Source of the DNA: Lytechinus pictus
Lineage: Eukaryota
Direction of reading: 5' to 3'
Assembly (NCBI RefSeq): GCF_037042905.1
Contig: NC_087245.1
Span: forward strand, 13,268,001-13,332,000
DNA length: 64,000 nucleotides
Position 1 is the first letter of the stretch. Every line of letters starts with the position of its first letter. Shown here piece by piece: positions 50,122 to 62,100 of this stretch. The notes under the pieces were generated by a model, which saw only the letters and a list, made by a program, of their open reading frames with translations, had not been told where the DNA came from and did not search any database. The translations under genes were made by a program, and so were the position numbers.

Positions 50122-53100
50122 CTACGTATCTTCTTCAAGTCTCTGAACTACATATTGTCTTGCTTTCTCCTTGCACTCTTCCAAGCTATATGATGCTAAG
50201 CCACGCCCCCTAGCAAAGGTCTCTGAGCCGAAGCCCTTCCCCTCCATCTCACTCATCACAAAGTCCATCCACTGGCTGGCATGTAATCCCCTCGAAACAA
50301 ACTCCTGCACGAAACAAATGAAATGAAAAATGTATTCAATGAAGGCTGAATCTTCAATCATGAGAGTAGCAATGATAAAGCTTTAGAAATGAAATACTTA
50401 CATTGCTAATGCAACTGTCACAAATACCTTTACGAACGATTTTTATTCATTGCAATAGGTGGTATATTTGTATGGTGTTCGTAAGGGTATTTGTGACCAA
50501 AGCATTACTTTCATTACTAATGCCAAAGTTTGATGTTAATTTTTTAAATGGTTTAACGCTACTGAAAGAACAATTTCAGAAAAAAGCCATATTTTAGCCA
50601 CTGGATATGACCTCTTAAACTGAGATTTCATAATCAATGGCTAAAGCTTGTAAGTACAATTAATTATTGGGGGAGGGAGGGGTAGGTGAGAAGGTAAAAC
50701 AAAAAACATGTTCAATCTTTCTTGAAAGTCACCTTCAATATATTCTCATCAAGTGCAAGTGAAATCAACAAACGAAATGTCAATTAATTACAGGAAGTAA
50801 TGTACCAGACACTAGAAGTGTGGTATGAAATCAACAACAAGCAGATGTTCTTTCAACATTCCAAGTGTCATCAAACCATGAAATTAACTCTCGTGCAGGA
50901 TGAAACTGACAAGGAAGCTATCTTGAAAGGGAGTGAAATATACACTGGAGTTGTAAACACAGAGAAATGCAGGTCACAGTCGAGCCTTTGTTTAGTATAC
51001 TTGGAAATTAGGATCAGCATTGAGATATTTTATTGAGAATTAAAAAAAATGAAATTGCAAACAAGACAGATTTCAAATACATTTGATAACTTGGGCAATG
51101 TACAATAAACACTAGTTAGCCTGTGTTTATAAAGAGTTGCAGGTTGATCACTCATACCACAAAAATTAACAGGATATTGGTTTGATTTCAAAAATAAATT
51201 TCTTATCAAGAAATAAATTCAAAAACTTGATTTCATAGCTTGATTCTGTCACAGAACACCAGTACTAATAGATGTGTAATTATGCAAATTATTTTGCAAA
51301 TTGAATGAAGAAAAAATTACCTGAGGCACTCTGCAGATGCAATAAGCCTTCTCCTTGTCAGTACTGAAAAGCATGATGGGAGTAGAACCAAAGTCGTCTT
51401 CTAATGATTGTTGTATTTTCAAAAGCACCTGGAAGAGATATAGACATGCAATAAATAACAGATAATTACTTTAGAATCAATGTCAAAATTATATGAAATA
51501 ACACAGTAGCTACTAGGGTGACCTTTCACAATGGCAAATCAAAATAAAAGGTTCCACGGTGGCTATTACTGATAGAATAAGTTCTATCGGTGGTAGGTTT
51601 TTATGAAACATTGACATGATTAGGTAACATTGCAGCAATTCTACACTTCATTTCATTAACAAGATTCTCTTGACTTAAATACTAACTCTAACAGAAAAGA
51701 AAATGTCACTGCTTTGTACATCCCTTTATTTTCAAAATTGGTGGCATTAGCATTACAGATGGCACTAAAGGACAGTATATTTCCAAATTTTTCCTTGGTA
51801 CTTGCTATAGAGCCTATATCTCAAACTCTTAAAATTTTTTGAAAAGCATTTCTCCTACAATAAATGCCATCAATGTTAAATATAACATAGTTAAGCAAAT
51901 ATATTTCAATTTTCAAAACCTTCATGACTTCACTACATAGCCATTCTCGGCCCTATACAGTCAGAGCGCCACGCGTATGCTAATGAGCACGATCGCTGAA
52001 ATTTATTCAGAATCCCATCCGCCCGAAAATCATCTAGCGGGACTCTCGTAGATCGCGAGATATCACGAGAGTCATGCAGGTCTCGTTCTAATGACGTCAT
52101 ACTCTTCACTGGAAAAGCCAAGATGGAAGAATGCAACCGTAAGTAAATCTTGAAATCTTTAGCTTTATTTTGATATGAAATATGTGGTAATCCAGAAAAA
52201 AATTGAACCTGAAATAATGCTTTAGATCTAGGCAATATTTTAGCCGGATCGGAGATCGAATTTTTCATTAGAATGTTGTTTTTTACGTCCTGACCCTCCT
52301 CAGAATTTTTGGCTTTCGTGAAGCCTCCGATGTTGTAGAATATATTTCAGTGATGAACATGTGTAAATATCTCTGGGACGCAAAATCTCCTTCGTACTCG
52401 TATTTTACGATGAAACTACCTCAAATTTTCCATTTTGTCAACTGCACTGACGCTGATTCTTCTTTTGTACTTGTTTATTTTATTGAGTGATGACGTCAGC
52501 CATGGTCTCGCGCGGAGTAACCAACTGGTGGGTCAGTCCCATTAGTGTATTTTTGTGTCTTGTTTAAAAAGCTTGGTGCCCCCAATTCTCTCACATTGAT
52601 TGTGCGAGGGCCAAATCATTGCCATGCGAACTTGAAATAAAGATTAGATCTAGTTTGAAATTATTTTGTAATTATTCCATGAGGTTGCAATCTAATTTTG
52701 TGCCTTATATTCTGATGCATTTCATCCAAATCAGACTATTATTTGAGACTGAGATAGAGCTCGAGAGCTGTGACACTAGTGTCAGTGACATGACACTGTC
52801 AACAGTTGTCTAAAAAAAAAGGGAATTGACAGATTGAGATTGACTGACTTCTTGACTAGCCATGAGGCTCCTTGAGAGTAAATATCATTCATTAACGTGT
52901 GCTTACCCTCCTTGGAGCCAGGGATTGCATCCCATACATTTGCGTGTACCGCGAAAAAAAACCCAGAAATTTTACGCTCTCGAGATTTCTACTTTCCATA
53001 TAAGAGAGGTAGATCTAGTCCTAAATCATGTGAATGGGATATACAACTTCATCTCTGACATTTTTACATTTAAAACAAGAATTCATTAAAAAGACAGAAA

Positions 53101-56100
53101 ACTTTCAACGATGTTCATGTCACCATCATGTTTTTTTTTTTTTTTTGCCAAGGCTACAAAACGCCTATTGAGGAAATGAAGTTGTATCCCATTTACATGA
53201 TTTAGGTATAGATCTTTTAGAAGGAAAGTAGAAATCTTGGGGAGAGTATGCATTTTACTCTCTGGGTCAGGAGCCTCCTGGCTACAGGTATTCTCTCTAG
53301 TTGTCAGTACTAATAGATCTCTATTGTAATTGATTATTGAATTAAAGTTATTAAGTAAATTGAAAATGAATTATGGAAACCTCAATAATAAACCTTGGTT
53401 AACAAAGGTGTCATTATATATTTTTTTTAGAATTCAATTTAATCGTAGAATCTAATGTTAGATCTAAGCTTGATCTACTTTCTTTGAAAATTTAAATTCA
53501 AGACTCGGGCAATATACTAATCAAGAAGTTAACGTCCATGGGAACTCATTCATTTACTCATATTTTGTGGACTTTGAATTTTGATGAGACAAAAAGACAT
53601 TTTAGCCCAAGATTTATTCAAGAAAGTTTGCATTTTTCAGGTGACAATCTGACATAGACTCAGATTTGAATTTTATTGCATTTTTAAAAACATGTATCAT
53701 TACATGATTAATTGTGCAGATGGGTGAGGCCTGAGGGGCCCTGATATGGTGGGGGGGGGGGGGGCTTTCATTATCATAACTGCACTTTTTGCTATAAATT
53801 TTATTACAAACAGCTAAAACTTACCATCCAATTATGATTTTTTGCATGATCCCAGGCTAATTCTGCTCAGTCCTCCCCCTTCCCACTCCAAAACAAAAAA
53901 AGAAGAAACATTCTGCGGCCTTTGGGTATCCACACAGACAATGTCATTGTACAGATATTTTTAAGAAGTGCCATACTGATACAGCAATGCTTTGATAATT
54001 GAATTGTCACACTGCTGATTTTATTTTCTGGGGGAGCAGCAAAATTATTTTTTGATGGAGATGTGTCCCTCAAACCCTGAAATGGGAGTTCAAGAGGGAA
54101 ACATACATGAACATGTATTTGTTTTTAATATAGTTAGGAAATATGAGCAATATTTTGATAAACTAAAATATGAATCTATGCATTTTATTTATTGTAAATT
54201 ACTGAGCCTGCAAATTCTTTTTGCTTTGGGCAAAAATATTACTTGGATGGGCGCTTCTATTGCTATTTCAATAGATTTGTTTGCTATTTTTTCCACCGTG
54301 TCCTTCTTCATTAAGTGCTGACAAATTTTTATATGTGAACATTGTAATTTTGCTCTGAGTAAATAAATGATAGGAAGTTAAATGTTATGTTATTACATAT
54401 TGCAATTATTTTCTTTGTAATAACATTTAACTCTCTGTCCTTTTGTTTTATTGCTTTCCTAGTTTGGAATTTATTTTGTTGTAAAAGCAATCTTTTCTTT
54501 TTTTTTCTTTACAGATCACCTTCACATCTGGCTGGATGCCAAGTTCTTTTGATAGGAGACTCAATTGTGTGACACGCTGTTTTTAATGGACCCTTTTCTT
54601 CTGAAACTTTGTGCTTTCCAGGGGCTAATGTTACATCGTTAAGATCATCATTCGTCAAATCTTTCAGAATTACTTCGACTTTTCTACAAAGGCTGTTTTC
54701 ATCCATATAGGAACAAACAATTTAGAACATAGTGTTTGGGAAAAGGATTCCAAAGCATTTCACAATTTGTATATCAGTGTTAGAGAGCAATTTCGGTGTG
54801 CAAAGATTATTAACTGTTTGGGATAAAGTACAGATTCCCATATGCTATTATCCAGACATTGAATTATATGGCTTTGTTGTATCCAGGGATGATGGGGAAG
54901 TACATGTAGCATGCCAGTGGGACACAGATGAAAGTATTGAAAAGATTAAATCAAATGTTTTATATCTCACAAGGGGTTGTTCTTGTGCCAAGAGCAAATG
55001 TCATAACCGTTTATGTAAATGTAGAATAGAGGGTAGATTTTGTGGGCCAGGTTGCCGCTGTAGACAGTGCCAAAATCTTACTGCTGTAGAGAAACTGGCA
55101 AGTGATAGTGACTCCAGTGAAGAAGATTCTGATATTGATCATTTTGATTATGATTCTGATTTTGATGAAGTTCCTTGTGATAAAACAAATATCGAAGGTA
55201 CCATTGAAATCGACATTGATGGTGATTTATCTCTGTTTGAAGATTTGCAGGAAGACTGTTCAGATTATGAGTAGGCATTCTCTGTGTCATGTTCTTGTAG
55301 CCCTTTAAAATCATTCATCAGTCATTTAATCAGTCTATTATATGCCAGTATTCATTGGCTGCTGTGAGGGTGAAGTTTGTTACATTGAATCAATTCATGA
55401 TAGCTATTACTTTTATATTATGTACATGTTTTTTTTAATGGTTATAATTTTTGTTTAAAGAACATTTATAAGAAGGCATGACAGGCAATGTGGAAATGTT
55501 GGTGAGCATTTACACATGTTTTTTATGCATGTGATACCTTTTTATTTGTATATCATTAAGTGTCTGCAACATTACACTATTTCCACATTATGCATAACAG
55601 AAGAAGTTGAACTATTTTTTTTTTTCACAAGTATGCACATTTTTCATATATTTAACGTACCTTGCCATGTTATGTTTATTCTTGCTTTTTACTGCAATAC
55701 ATATGAGTCAGTGTATGTATACGTTTCTTGCCAGTTCCATTGAGGTCTTGCAGGTCAATCATTTTGGTAGCTGAAATAATAGTTGTCGTAGTTGTATGAA
55801 ACAAATGTGAAGTTTCTTACGACAATTGTGAGGCTTAAGCAGAATACATGATGGTTACATGTATTTTGTTAGATTGGCTAATTATTTCATTAGCAATATA
55901 TAGAGGTGCAGTACATGTATTTCCTCTTGAACTTTGACGCAGCTTTTTTCAATATGTGTGTGATTTACAATATCCTATAAAACAGTTGTGTATATTATTA
56001 TTATTATTTTGCCCTGTTGTTGCTTTGCTTTTGCTACTTATGATTATGATTATGTAAATGTGTAACTTTTTTTGCTTACATACATGTATTGAACCTTTTG

Positions 56101-59100
56101 TACAAGTTGTCATGATGGTGAGCATTGAACTACCCTTGTTCCTACTTTTACATGTACATTATATATATTTTCATGATCACCTCTTTATAAATTGTTTTTC
56201 CTTGTCATTTAGATAGTGCATTGTGGCAGTTTCTTGCAGGTCAATCATTTTGGCAACTCAGATAATAGTTTTTGTAGTCACATGTATATGAAACAAATGA
56301 TAAGTTTCTTACAGCAATTGTGAGGCTTAAGCTAAATACATGATGGTTACATGTATTTTGTTAGATTGGCTAATTATTTCATTAGCAATATATAGAGGTG
56401 CAGTACATGTATTTCCTCTTGAACTTTGACGCAGCTTTTTCAATATGTTTGTGATTTACAATATCCTATAAAACAGTTGTGTATATTATTTTACCCTGCT
56501 GTTGCTGTTCCTACTTATGATTATGTAAATGTGTAAATTTTTTGTTTATGTAAATGTGTAAATTTTTTGTTTATATGTTGAAGCACTTGTACAAGTTGTC
56601 ATGATGGTGAGCATTGAACTACCCTTGTTCCTACTTTTACATGTACATTATGTATATTTTCATGATCACCTTTTTATAAATTGTTTTTTCCTTGCCATTT
56701 AGAGAGTGCATAGTGGCAGTTTTAACATCTCATACACATGTTAACAATGGGGACATTATTACAGTTGGTGATACGTATATTGACCCCAGTAATTCCATAT
56801 ATTGTAATATGTATTACCTAGATATACATGTATGTAAACGTATGGCTGAATTATTTCTTTTATGAGGCAGTTTTGATGGCACTGACTTCTGTATACAAAG
56901 ATTATTTCACTTGTTTCCTGTCATGACTACCAAAGTAATTTCACTGATGACGGGCTTTCCTAAACAATACATTCCTTGTTTATAAAATTGTTTTAACTCA
57001 TATTTACCTCAACTACTGTCTGCTTGCCAAAGACATTCAGGGAGCATTAGATGTAAAACTGCCTTTATCTTTATTAACATGTTTGATTGTAAAACAAAAA
57101 CAGTATTCACTTATACTCTCTTCATGTACTTGCCTTGAATGATATTAGGTGCCAAAGTTTTTTGCTTGTATTTATATGTTTTGTAAACATGAGTTTCAAG
57201 AGTTTGATGTTGGAAATAAACTCTTTTTTTCTTGTTAAAATTGATCAGATATTGAACATGCTTTCAATTTTTTTTCTTTAGGAATATCCATTTACTATGA
57301 GCTAGATTTTGAATTCATGCATTGTATTGCACTGGAGATCTGAATATGAGAATATAGAAGAATAAATGAAGAAAGAAATAGAAAAAAATCAAGATTTAAA
57401 GAAAAAGAAGAGAATATGTGTATGAACTTAAGTTACAGTTACACAACTGTTTAAACACGTTTCTGTGCATGACAAAAAGAAAAGATGTGTTCGATTAGAA
57501 AGTCGGCTGGATGTGTGAGGAAAATATTACATGTAATATCAAGAGAGAGAGAGACAGACAGAGCAACACTAATAGAGAGGGAGAGAGATGGGTGTTTCCC
57601 ACGGAGAAAGGTGTTTGAAAATGAATAAAAAAACACAGTAGTGGGACAAGATTTGTGAATATGAGGAATTGAAAATTGAGGAGGAAGACGAGATCTGTTG
57701 AACAAATGATATCCAAGTATCCCACTGCACGATGGAATGTAATTGTTCAGAGAAAAGGGTGGATAATGAATCGTGATAAATAGAAATATACATCGCACCC
57801 AGGTGTGGAACCAGGGGGGGGGGGACACGTGCCCCCCCCTTGAGAGTATTGAGAGCAACTTGTCTATTTTTTTAAATGTAAACATACCGTAAATACACAA
57901 GTGTCCCCCCCCCCTTAGAGTGGCAGCAAATATTTTAAATGGGATTATGTGGTTCCTTTACAAGTGAGCCCCCCCCCCTTTTTTTTGGGGGGGGGGTTGT
58001 TAATTTCAAATGTGGCAAAATGTCAGTCATTTTTGGAGGGAAAACTTTTGCTTGTCAATATTTCCTACGAAATATTTGCCCCCTCCCCTTTTGGAAAATC
58101 CTGGATCTGGCCCTGATCACACCCCCCCCCCAAATAAATAAATAAATAAACAGAAATACTAGTGAATAAAACAAAATCAACTAATGGGAGAAAGAAAATT
58201 GATAAAATGGATTGATAATGATTTAGAACAGTAAAACAAAACACATGAATTATGGAGGGTGTCTTTGCATTTTTGTATTTTTTATGCTTTTCTAAACTTC
58301 CAAGCATGTTGACATTTATTAATTGTTCTATCCATTCTTGTTTGTTTCTGAAAACGGGATGTGTGCATGTATGTAATTCTTTTCAACAAATCTTGGCAAC
58401 AAAACCGGCCGGGGGGGGGGGGGGGGCAGCATCAATAAGTTAACTAAGTACATACCGGTACATGTAATTCAGAAAACGCAGAATTGCATACATGGGACTG
58501 AGTTTATTGATAAAACACAAATACGACTCTACTCACTTAGAATGGCTATAATAATGAATGCAGAGATATAAGGAAATATCCCATGAAATTTTTTGCATTC
58601 TTGTCAGTCTTCTATATTGAAAAATCTATCAAAAACAATTTTACGTCTATAAACTTTGTATAAAAGAACAAATACTCTATGAAAGTAGACGACGTTGTTG
58701 TTCGGGGTTTCGCTTCGAAAGTCGATGAGTAGAAAGGTCATGACCTGCGATCACGCGTTGAATCCATGGAATGCGTTGACCAATCAGATTGCTCTATTTA
58801 CGTAACTCGTTTGAAGCTCGTTTTGGACAGGCCCTCATAATGACTTGGCGGTATGTTTCCCTGGTTCCTGACTCTCCTCATTAATGAAAAACCATGAATT
58901 ATGTCTCATTTTAAAGAGTGATAATTCAGCTTTACAACTGTTATTAAATTTGAAGGACGCAAGAATTATGAAATGGTATTATACGTCGTTAAAGCTGAAT
59001 GATTTGAATTTTTCCGGGGGCAAAGTTCTAGGGCAGTTTACCTTACTAAGTTAATGAAATATGTCGATAATTATGGTATATATCGAATCCTTGATTCTTC

Positions 59101-62100
59101 CCCTTTCTATCGATATAATGTTTATGGTTTAAAACAGTAAATTAACCCGGTAAAACGCAGAGAAACTAGACCCTTGCGTTCCTCATTACGTATTCATGAA
59201 CCGAGCGGTCACGAATACGAGCTGAATAAATACGTGCGAATTAGCTCGCGCGGCGGAGTGACTGTATACAATTTGATGGATTCTCAATACGGTGCACCAA
59301 CTATCAGTTGTAGCAGACAAGGTCCAAGAGGTGGGAAAGAAATTTGTTTCATATTTCTTTTCGAATTTTAGACTGTTTTTGGTGAATTCTTCCTCCGCTT
59401 TTGCCCAATGGTTTTCATTTTAGAAGCATCAGAGTCACATTACAGTACACTAGCACTGCGATGCCTGCGCCTGCACGTGATGTCCATCCGAAGTTAGAGA
59501 TTAGGCTGTCCGCTGCAACCAATAGATGCTGCACCGTATTGTGAATCCACCATATTGATTGTAATTTTCCTAAATAGTTTACCATAGACTTAAAATCACA
59601 ATCCATTGTGTCATTGATTGTGCGTTTTAGGTTAATGAGCCCCTTCTCTTTACTTTATGTGCAGAGACATAGAATGGAGTAAACAATTTCAACATTTTAG
59701 CTACAGGAACAATGAGATATGGATAATTCTGTGGTTGACAGGATGGATCAAAATTAGCCTTACCTTGTTATCAATACTATTCCCTGCCATTCCTATCACA
59801 CATAACGGATTCTTATCACCAAGTCTGAACTCTTCATTTAGTCTCTCAGAAACCTACATGAGGAAAACAATGGATATTTTTATTGTTGGTTATTTGGTAG
59901 TTAGGTAATTCATTCCACCGTATTTGGTAGTTAGGTTGCACCTACATGTTTCCAGGGAGAATTTGCATCTCAAAAACATAAGTCCTTTCCAGGATTTCAC
60001 AAAGTTTCAAGAAAGGATACTCTGCACTCCCCCTTCTGTTTTATTTCATCTCCATCTTTTCTACAAATCTTCTATGAACCAAAAAAAACACCCCTCTAAC
60101 ATTGGATTTTCATCTAATCTTTAGCAATGCAGTACAATTTGAATGTATCTACATCACTGCTCCAATGAATACCTGTCTGAAACCAATATAGCCTGGGGGT
60201 GTTTCACAAAGATTTACATTTCAAGTAAGTATAACTTACAGTCGCACTTACATGTAACTGCCTTGTTGCGTGCTGTATAAAAGGCATGACTGTATCGGTC
60301 AGGTCATCCCAAGAGGACTCCCACTACTGCGTATTGATCTTTTAGATTACGCACCGTATGTAGCTAAGTGCGACTCTCAGTCATACTTAAATCTGTGTGA
60401 AACAACCCCCAGGGGAGCATTTCATAAAAAGACTCGTCAGATGTTTTATACGAAAAGTCTTTTTATCCGACTGTTACAGTGCTTCTTGGCCAATCAAAGT
60501 TAAGGAAAGACGTCAGATCTGACAACCTGTTGGACAAGGATGTTGATGAAATGATTCCCTGATATTTATTAGCATTTAGAGTCCATTTTTCCTAATTTAA
60601 AAAGTCTGACAATTCATCCCAAATGGATGATAGCAGATTATTTTCTTCTCTAATTTCCATCTAAGATTTTCTTAATCTCTTAGGCTTTCTTCTTTTCCCA
60701 AATTCTGCTTTGACAATGCTACCAGGGAGATTGCTCTGGTCCAATAACACTTACATGTACCTTGTACCTAATATTTGCATGACTTACATTAAATCATCCT
60801 AACAAATCTTCACGAAAACCACTTGTTATCTTAGGACTGACCTGTTTAATGACTGATCTCTTGTTGAGTTTTTCTGCTTTCTTAAGTTTATTCTGCATAT
60901 CAGCAACTCGTCTGTTCATCTCTCTCTTCTTCCATAGATCTATATGAGCCCCTTCAACATCCTGTACAAAGGTTTCTAAAGATTCCATCACACTGTCTCT
61001 GGACTCTGGATTATTTGAAGTCGATACATTGTGAATCTGAAGTTAATAAAATGACAGGAGAACATTTTTTAAAAAAAGCTAACGTACTGTGGTCAGCTTG
61101 CCATTAATGTTAAATACATGTATTCTGGAAACCTTGATTTTGATTGGCTGTTGAGCCCTGTTACCATGGTAAATGCGGACGTGGGCTGCGAGTGAGAATT
61201 AAAAATTAAAGAAATATCTAACTGAACGATGAATCCCGTGTAACTTTACATAAGATCCCAGGAAAACTAAAGTATTTAAATGAGGTTTATATAATGACTT
61301 TGAAAGAAAAAGACTGTGATTAATGCATGGTAAGAGTACACTGTGGTTGACTTATCTCTCAGGAGCAATGAGAAGGAGTGACGTTACAACAAGGGCACAA
61401 CATGCATCATGAAATGCACAAAAGTGACAGAAAAACCCTTGACATCTTTCTTTCTAAATCACACTAACCTCTGTCTCAAGCTGGCCGAGTCTCTGCAGAA
61501 ACTTGTTGGAGGTATAGTCAGCTAACATGACATCATTACTGGTCACTACGGTCAGTCTTCTCACACCCTTACTGACCAGCTTCTCAGATACAATGACCAA
61601 TCTACGGATGTGACCAGTGTTCTGGACATGCCTAGAAAGGACAGAGGAATGATGGGAAGGGATAGAACAAAATGAACTGTCAAAGCCGAATAAACATACT
61701 TCCAAAGTCAAGAAGTCAAAATTAAGACCTCCAATCAATAATAATGACAGTTCTGCCTTTGGTGCCAGCTGCTGTTTCCAATGCATTCAAGAAATTACTA
61801 CTATACAACAAATCAAAGCAAAATTATATTTGCTTTCAAGTCATTGTTTGCTTTTTTCACAAATAAGTATTTAAGTTTTAAGAAACTTTTTTACTTCATG
61901 ATATATCATAAAAGCTATGTAGAAACAAGTTACACTACATGTATTACATTTTAACATTCCCTAAACAAGTTTTCGCATATTCAAGTGATTTAAATAAATA
62001 AGGAAATAATAAAGTGAGAAAAAGTTTTGATATGAAAGAAAAAAGTAAAGGGACTGTTCATTTTTCTTCTAGTTGCACAGCATTTGTGGTATACAAATTA

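Follow-up and report, generated by a model that had tools for sequence, protein, structure and literature searches.

A deleted copy of a probable AcademX-type DNA transposon in Lytechinus pictus, and the predicted esterase gene that precedes the transposase in its full-length parent

Organization of the locus

The window analysed here is a 64,000-nucleotide stretch of the Lytechinus pictus genome (RefSeq assembly GCF_037042905.1, contig NC_087245.1, positions 13,268,001–13,332,000 of the forward strand); positions below refer to this window unless a contig is named. It contains a mobile element bounded by short terminal inverted repeats (TIRs) and a target-site duplication (TSD). Taken as a whole, we read this element as a non-autonomous copy, reduced by internal deletion, of a young cut-and-paste transposon of the AcademX type, with a probability of roughly 0.85. 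The full-length parent copy carries two long plus-strand open reading frames, ORF1 and ORF2, within a single transcription unit (RefSeq gene LOC129268148). ORF1 encodes a predicted SGNH-type esterase and ORF2 a predicted DDE transposase. The window copy retains the following features.

51958–59264: whole deleted element, 7,307 bp, delimited by homology between copies and by the TIRs
51954–51957, no strand: left TSD, TATA, identical to the four bases at 59265–59268
51958–51975, plus strand: 5′ TIR, 18 nt, starting CAGTCAGAGCGCC; homology between copies begins here
52131–52138, plus strand: coding end of ORF1 exon 1 (ATG CAA CC), followed by a GTAAGT donor at 52139–52144, about 175 nt inside the 5′ end
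52139–54514, plus strand: intron 1, 2.4 kb, with a polypyrimidine tract and CAG at its 3′ end; the RefSeq protein P0071 maps from the next base
54515–54811, plus strand: truncated ORF1 exon 2 with SGNH blocks I (GDS), II (PGA) and III (GTNN); block V (DGLH) is deleted
54811–54812, no strand: deletion junction, 6,381 bp missing relative to the parent, without microhomology
54812–55274, plus strand: 3′ remnant of ORF2, comprising the nuclease-adjacent end, one CXC domain (Cys9) at 54972–55076, an acidic tail and a stop codon at 55272–55274
55275–59246, plus strand: 3′ non-coding part of the element, with two tandem units of about 490 bp and G-run/C-run inverted repeats
59247–59264, minus strand: 3′ TIR, 18 nt, from the inverted-repeat search and the copy ends
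59265–59268, no strand: right TSD, TATA, pairing with the left TSD

The parent is a 13,200-bp copy at G000:C3:42730021–42743220, with intact inverted repeats and its own 4-bp TSD, and its homology with the window extends from 51954 to 59268. Both ends, the subterminal DNA, exon 1, intron 1 and 4 kb of 3′ non-coding DNA are kept in the window copy.

The deletion junction in the window copy

The interval 54515–55274 is a scar in which the start of the esterase gene is fused to the end of the transposase gene, and it yields no functional protein. A sequence-only reading of this DNA had noticed an abrupt switch near 54812 from an SGNH-like to a cysteine-rich stretch and had proposed an internal-deletion derivative of a large, spliced DNA transposon. 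Window positions 54400–54811 match the parent at C3:42732562–42732975 and positions 54812–55400 match it at C3:42739357–42739945. The switch therefore marks the 6,381-bp internal deletion, and its position is the exact junction. Because the deletion joins the two genes out of frame, coupling ORF1 exon 2 to the last 154 codons of ORF2, the deleted form cannot encode an SGNH–CXC fusion.

The lesions and motifs that had been read from the letters are also present. From 54516, frame 2 gives block I (LLIGDSIV), then a TGA at 54570–54572 and then block II (CFPGANV); after the frame change, frame 1 gives block III and continues to ...AKII. The TGA is private to the window copy, with C in the other 12 deleted copies, and the frameshift, a lost C at about 54665, is common to all 13. 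The frame that starts at 54812 reads VWDKVQ...YGF...WDTDE, followed by the Cys9 pattern CxCx4Cx4CxCx6Cx3CxCx2C and the acidic tail. Profile searches with Pfam hidden Markov models, which had been proposed as a check, place the TCR family (PF03638) above its cut-off in the window (30.6 versus 23.5 bits, E 4e-7), and Lipase_GDSL_2 above its cut-off only in intact ORF1; the window SGNH fragment by itself is a weak match (E 0.038).

Sequencing run X1, which is guessed to be RNA, contains an abundant deletion-junction contig in which the junction is a loose end at a depth of about 360. Depth is 7–13 in the parts unique to the full-length copy and about 14 in intron 1 (L038:6706–6976 region compared). 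If run X1 is indeed RNA, the deleted copies are transcribed strongly and far above the autonomous copy.

Copy family and element ends

A search of the species' own assembly (811 Mb) with positions 54400–55400 found 12 further full-span copies at 98–99% identity. These sister copies carry the same deletion as the window copy and lie at different loci, each with its own 4-bp TSD. The assembly thus holds 13 deleted copies including that of the window, 96–99% alike, and one full-length copy. The TIRs of all copies start CAGTCAGAGCGCC (CAGTCAG...; ends were read in 14 copies). All 14 copies (13 deleted and one full-length) have perfect 4-bp TSDs whose sequences vary and include TATA, TGTA, TCTA, ATAA, TACA, AATT, TAGG, TGAC, CAAA, TGTC, GTAT and TACC, among others. 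Together, the TIRs and TSDs bear out the earlier view that the remnant belongs to a large DNA transposon.

Three solo end fragments were observed, none with a partner end nearby: a 5′ end at G000:C2:40869196–40869569 (94% identity), a 59-nt 5′ tip at C5:10158909–10158967 and a 40-nt 3′ tip at C1:16167116–16167155.

ORF2: transposase, nuclease and CXC domains

ORF2 of the full-length copy comprises 1,771 codons without an intron. Its domain order is a Cys-rich N-terminus, a DDE region, a nuclease region and one CXC domain. In Pfam it matches DUF6589 at residues 696–1008 (E 4e-12) and TCR/CXC at residues 1672–1706 (E 1e-5). An alignment of 30 relatives shows conservation of the Cys-rich N-terminus and invariant acidic residues at D536, D747 and E1001/E1004. 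The predicted model of the DDE region, folded with its alignment, has a predicted local distance difference test score (pLDDT) of 83. Compared with 48,161 representative chains, it aligns best with the Drosophila P-element transposase (Z 11.7, 318 residues aligned), followed by Hermes (Z 8.6), with Tn5, retroviral integrases, RAG1 and Transib at lower ranks; a Foldseek search with the same model returned nothing significant. The model indicates that ORF2 contains a DDE transposase domain of the RNase-H fold. In a subgroup of relatives, an OTU cysteine-protease domain is found between the first and second catalytic Asp (P0019 residues 604–768, P0031 residues 507–660). The point of insertion corresponds to a loop that is disordered in the DDE model of this element.

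Residues 1225–1630 are predicted with a pLDDT of 89 to adopt a fold that matches only 5′-nucleases of the FEN1/XPG/XRN superfamily: Exo1 (Z 14.7), FEN1 (13.6), XRN (13) and XPG (12.7), along with Rad2 and T5 FEN. This region contains an invariant E-x-D followed 21 residues later by D-x-D, a spacing that FEN1 shares. By its predicted fold, ORF2 therefore carries a FEN1/XPG-type nuclease. The sequence-only reading had suggested that full-length copies might have a transposase and an XPG-type nuclease between the SGNH and CXC parts, and the predicted structures of the full copy agree with this arrangement.

The C-terminal domain corresponds to the Tesmin/TSO1 CXC (CRC) class of DNA-binding domains. 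It has the Cys9 pattern, scores above the Pfam TCR cut-off, and the family profile matches the CXC domain of LIN54 (PDB 5FD3, E 3e-6). Host CRC proteins have a tandem pair of such domains, in contrast to the single CXC at the C-terminus of the transposase.

ORF2 relatives occur in other urchins, starfish, brittle stars, amphioxus and an annelid, and the DDE profile matches 5,652 cluster representatives. The latter count bears on whether the full-length locus could be a domesticated host gene, with the 13 short copies as dead relics and no active family. RefSeq does annotate an ordinary gene with isoforms there, and this subfamily has a single full-length copy. A domesticated gene would nevertheless have to lie between intact inverted repeats with its own 4-bp TSD, beside deleted copies at different loci that are still 96–99% identical, and in a genome that has many paralogous families with long open ORF2s of 1,744–1,854 codons. 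Together with the wide spread of the DDE profile, these observations make domestication very improbable.

ORF1: a spliced esterase gene

RefSeq isoform X2 of LOC129268148 corresponds to ORF1 (P0071, 529 residues, three exons) and maps to the parent at 100% identity. Isoform X1 of the same gene corresponds to ORF2 from its first AUG, and L. variegatus shows the same arrangement. The spliced ORF1 was taken from P0071; exons and pieces were searched separately, and the joint between exons 1 and 2 was translated by script to establish the phase. Exon 1 was placed at the donor 52138|52139 on the basis that P0071 starts with MQP and that a single fitting exon exists at the homologous place of the full copy. 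The strong acceptor at 54514 that had been noticed in the sequence is the start of exon 2 in the RefSeq model (54514|54515), and the depth of run X1 climbs from 4 to 200 at the place homologous to it. The inferred splicing of the element thus holds. The second ORF1 intron spans 248 nt with GT..AG ends, and its joint is also present in run X1 contigs. Exon 3 encodes a tail rich in Pro, Ser and Gln.

Intact ORF1 of the full copy matches Lipase_GDSL_2 (PF13472) at 33.4 bits against a cut-off of 32.9 (E 8e-8). The catalytic Ser, Gly, Asn, Asp and His of blocks I, II, III and V are invariant in 11 sequences of 32–92% identity. Basic runs resembling nuclear-localization signals (RRRRRKR and KKRKKPKRKRKRK) lie behind the esterase domain, and the Pfam scan of ORF1 detected no coiled coil or RNA-recognition motif. 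Upstream of the coding sequence, a perfect TGACGTCA palindrome resembling a cAMP-response element (CRE) is located at 52092–52099, about 30 nt 5′ of the ORF1 ATG and about 135 nt inside the 5′ end of the element. This palindrome may serve the transposon as a promoter element.

The esterase is a conserved first gene of the element

An SGNH ORF lies upstream of the transposase, on the same strand, in 7/7 testable foreign relatives (those with contigs of sufficient length), with 32–51% SGNH identity. Within the Lytechinus pictus genome, at least 10 paralogous loci with 41–54% CXC identity have an SGNH match 6.6–8.4 kb upstream on the same strand. Sequence comparison thus points to the esterase being an integral, conserved first gene of a DDE transposon. 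The sequence-only reading would have been undermined by SGNH matches that never occurred in cis with the CXC protein; the two are in cis throughout these foreign and paralogous loci. Its proposal of an N-terminal SGNH domain in the transposon protein stands in part. The domain belongs to the same element and lies upstream of the transposase, but it is encoded by a separate ORF1 and not in the transposase frame. ORF2 lies in the −1 frame relative to ORF1 where the two overlap, and only a recoding event that joins them would give the transposase an SGNH domain at its N-terminus.

The module itself is, by sequence, a retrotransposon-type esterase in a class II element, because the best solved relative found with a profile of 11 ORF1 relatives is the esterase of the zebrafish L2 ZfL2-1 long interspersed nuclear element (LINE) ORF1 protein (PDB 4C1B, E 7.7e-25), with PAF-acetylhydrolase-like chains next at E 1e-11. 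The match covers nearly the whole domain and includes the same Ser/Gly/Asn/Asp-His set, and in both systems the esterase is in the first ORF of a mobile element. The present element differs from CR1/L2 LINEs (PMC3905857) in being a class II DDE element and in having basic runs behind the domain.

This resemblance is what a chance juxtaposition would draw on. In such a case, an SGNH fragment of a CR1/L2 LINE or of an Ngaro element would have come to lie beside an unrelated CXC remnant, and SGNH esterases are best known from retrotransposons (PMC3905857). Both halves of the window remnant, however, are colinear with one 13.2-kb element inside inverted repeats and TSDs; the full copy has no reverse transcriptase between its SGNH and CXC parts; the order of SGNH then transposase recurs at the foreign and paralogous loci; and both ORFs fall within one RefSeq gene in two species. 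A chance origin of the pairing is therefore extremely improbable.

SGNH esterases have been treated as retrotransposon accessories, in CR1/L2, RTEX, Penelope and Ngaro elements. Here the esterase, with every catalytic residue under selection, is integral to a DDE element, and its role therefore cannot depend on RNA or reverse transcription; it must answer a need common to both classes, which might involve entry into the nucleus, membranes, or signaling by host lipids or acetyl groups. The long-standing question of the role of the esterase is narrowed in this way, and a second system becomes available for testing it. In the accessible literature, with Repbase entries outside the comparison, we found no description of an esterase combined with DDE, nuclease and CXC domains in a DNA transposon.

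The ORF1–ORF2 overlap

The overlap between the two genes was read in 11 loci (the full-length copy, L041–L043 and L076–L082), whose ORF2 identities range from 39 to 100%. At all 11, the sequence is GGGG-T-(GA, AA or AG) in constant phase, and ORF2, in the −1 frame, runs across the stop codon of ORF1. The residues are ...(L/Q)-G-stop in ORF1 and ...G-V-(K/R/D) in ORF2. The Gly codon is GGG in 11/11 loci and all three stop codons occur. Upstream of the overlap, the ORF1 frame is open for 40–237 codons, far beyond chance. In L041, the change of frame is confined to 12 nt that hold only the G-run.

The beginning of ORF2 is unusual as well. Its first AUG is codon 101, and P0209 (RefSeq isoform X1) consists of exactly residues 101–1771. 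Residues 1–100 contain no Met and are 44–62% conserved, like the rest of the protein, and include CGPC...C and CICxAC motifs. The same −1 arrangement, in which the overlapping downstream ORF has no start of its own and coding sequence is conserved before the AUG, is found in 11/11 loci. The GGGG-T-stop overlap and the conserved, AUG-less start of ORF2 therefore predict translational coupling, and the conserved overlap suggests that ORF2 is translated by recoding. Public annotation treats these loci as ordinary 'uncharacterized' genes. It starts the transposase at AUG codon 101 (P0209 and P0004, from LOC129268148 X1 and LOC121405715 X1) and therefore omits 100 conserved codons with two Cys motifs.

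Some observations count against recoding. No canonical X XXY YYZ heptamer is present at the conserved overlap site of the 11 loci, and single-sequence folds of the same loci (z −2.1 to +1.2) revealed neither a conserved nor an unusually stable RNA structure downstream and share no common helix; the aligned sequences have diverged too far for a covariation analysis. Alternatively, the GGG may be invariant because ORF1 conserves its C-terminal Gly.

The lack of a heptameric slippery site or stimulatory structure would fit translation of ORF2 by termination and reinitiation at GUGA, or by some other route independent of ORF1, with esterase and transposase always separate. It is joined by two further points in favor of such a route: GTGA at 8/11 junctions forms a stop–start overlap with the near-cognate codon GUG, and RefSeq models two separate proteins. 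The remaining 3/11 loci, however, encode this Val by GTA, a codon outside the near-cognate starts, and keep the G-run and ORF1 stop nonetheless. The constancy of the GGG codon and the confinement of the L041 frame change to 12 nt around the G-run also speak for slippage over reinitiation, and splice acceptors near the junction are absent in 8/11 loci. On balance, we consider an ORF1-independent route unlikely, if still a serious competitor to coupling by recoding.

Several other ways of reaching ORF2 were considered and set aside. Alternative splicing into ORF2 lacks an AG acceptor near the junction in those 8/11 loci and would be out of phase in the full-length copy. The overlap is unlikely to be a 5′ splice site, with G at position +5 in 2/11 loci and conserved ORF2-frame coding sequence downstream. 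Transcriptional slippage is unlikely given that four G are too short a run and that the X1 contig has no inserted G. In the full-length copy, a canonical UUUAAAU heptamer occurs at L038:8472–8478, at the very start of the open ORF2 frame and 30 nt ahead of the GGGG-stop site. It was rejected as a general slip site: it is not present in the relatives, and in L041 no more than 9 nt of open ORF2 frame precede the Val codon. Given this lack of conservation, the heptamer may have arisen by chance or mark a second site particular to the subfamily.

An arrangement of this kind resembles the −1 frameshift OrfA–OrfB fusions of bacterial IS1/IS3-family transposases and the domesticated hAT transposase KAT1 of Kluyveromyces, which uses a programmed frameshift (PMC4316626), in having a −1 overlap and a downstream ORF without a usable start. 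It differs in its site (a G-run that abuts the stop codon, and no A AAA AAG-type motif), in its animal host and in having an enzyme as the upstream product, and the present case is known from sequence alone.

Translational coupling is familiar from bacterial insertion sequences, and the domesticated KAT1 is the only eukaryotic DNA transposase in which we know of it. The present case, if true, would be an IS3-like OrfA–OrfB strategy in a eukaryotic DNA transposon. We put forward tentatively, at odds somewhat below even, the fuller proposal that an AcademX-like lineage of echinoderms and other marine invertebrates obtains its transposase exclusively by recoding, as an extension of a LINE-type esterase, through a conserved −1 slip of tRNA-Gly on G GGG at the stop codon of ORF1, and that the esterase module is common to class I and class II elements.

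Assignment to AcademX

AcademX elements encode a DDE transposase fused to an XPG-type nuclease and generate 3–4-bp TSDs, and the helicase-bearing AcademH elements generate 9–10-bp TSDs (PMC10045372, summarizing Kapitonov & Jurka 2010; Kojima 2020). The element described here has a predicted DDE fold and an XPG/FEN-type nuclease in the same protein and a 4-bp TSD, within the AcademX range, in all 14 copies. It also shares with AcademX a single very large protein of this composition, short inverted repeats and a marine invertebrate host. By architecture and TSD length, it is very probably of AcademX type. It is set apart by a spliced SGNH ORF1 upstream, with a −1 overlap into ORF2, and by the CXC domain at the C-terminus of ORF2; no description of the esterase or of the ORF overlap was found in the accessible literature, with Repbase entries again outside the comparison.

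Several points weigh against this reading of the window element. Membership in AcademX is drawn from architecture and duplication length. The nuclease is identified by predicted fold only: Pfam and PDB phmmer/hmmsearch found DUF6589 and CXC, and no sequence method found XPG. The movement of the deleted copies in trans is deduced from copy structure. The identity of run X1 as RNA is a guess, and true RNA-seq raw reads are sparse (5–20 per run). Profile searches aimed at fungal or AcademH members returned close animal relatives or nameless matches only, and a literature search for Academ paired with XPG found nothing in accessible papers.

The element might then be a real transposon that lies outside Academ, with a transposase of another DDE superfamily (P-like, Kolobok-like or new) and an independently acquired nuclease of the FEN/XPG fold. 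The top structural match of the DDE domain is the P-element transposase, and its sole Pfam label is DUF6589. P elements have 7–8-bp TSDs and THAP and GTP-binding domains. The TSD here is 4 bp, in contrast, and Pfam found no THAP domain in ORF2. The combination of a DDE domain, a C-terminal XPG-type nuclease and 3–4-bp TSDs is, to our knowledge, the published definition of AcademX only (PMC10045372). That definition fits the present element, and the Pfam label itself may point the same way: DUF6589 is reported to be enriched in a Puccinia rust fungus, and reports place Academ in Puccinia graminis, with its greatest abundance in Pucciniomycotina, so that both are prominent in Puccinia rusts. We regard a position outside Academ as improbable and retain the AcademX assignment.

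A proposed mechanism of transposition

The predicted domains suggest how an AcademX-type element of this composition might move. The DDE domain would cut and join the element ends with a 4-bp target stagger, and the FEN/XPG-type nuclease would process flap or second-strand intermediates. The CXC domain and the N-terminal zinc-finger-like region may bind element DNA. By analogy with the LINE ORF1 protein esterase, the substrate of the esterase could be a lipid or an acetyl ester, perhaps one met at the nuclear envelope.

Translation of ORF2 would be coupled to that of ORF1 at the overlap, G GGG T(GA/AA/AG). The likeliest route is that the P-site tRNA-Gly slips by −1, from GGG to GGG, with the stop codon in the A site. 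The product of the slip would be an esterase–transposase (ORF1–ORF2) fusion of about 2,300 residues.

The deleted copies would be moved in trans by the proteins of the full-length copy. On this model, the window copy is a passenger. It encodes nothing useful and has multiplied recently to at least 13 copies.

Further features of the non-coding regions

The 3′ non-coding region contains repeats of two kinds. The two tandem units of about 490 bp (55746–56232–56722) are about 87% alike. Their number or extent varies between copies, and certain copies align one unit of this array further than others. G10/C10 runs are clustered at 57813–58138 and make up several short inverted repeats.

Intron 1 contains a 255-bp palindromic unit at 52983–53237, with arms of 31–35 nt that are 80–90% complementary. 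The unit resembles a small nested foldback or miniature inverted-repeat transposable element insertion. The full-length copy differs from the window by an indel of about 60 bp at the edge of this unit (53238–53243).

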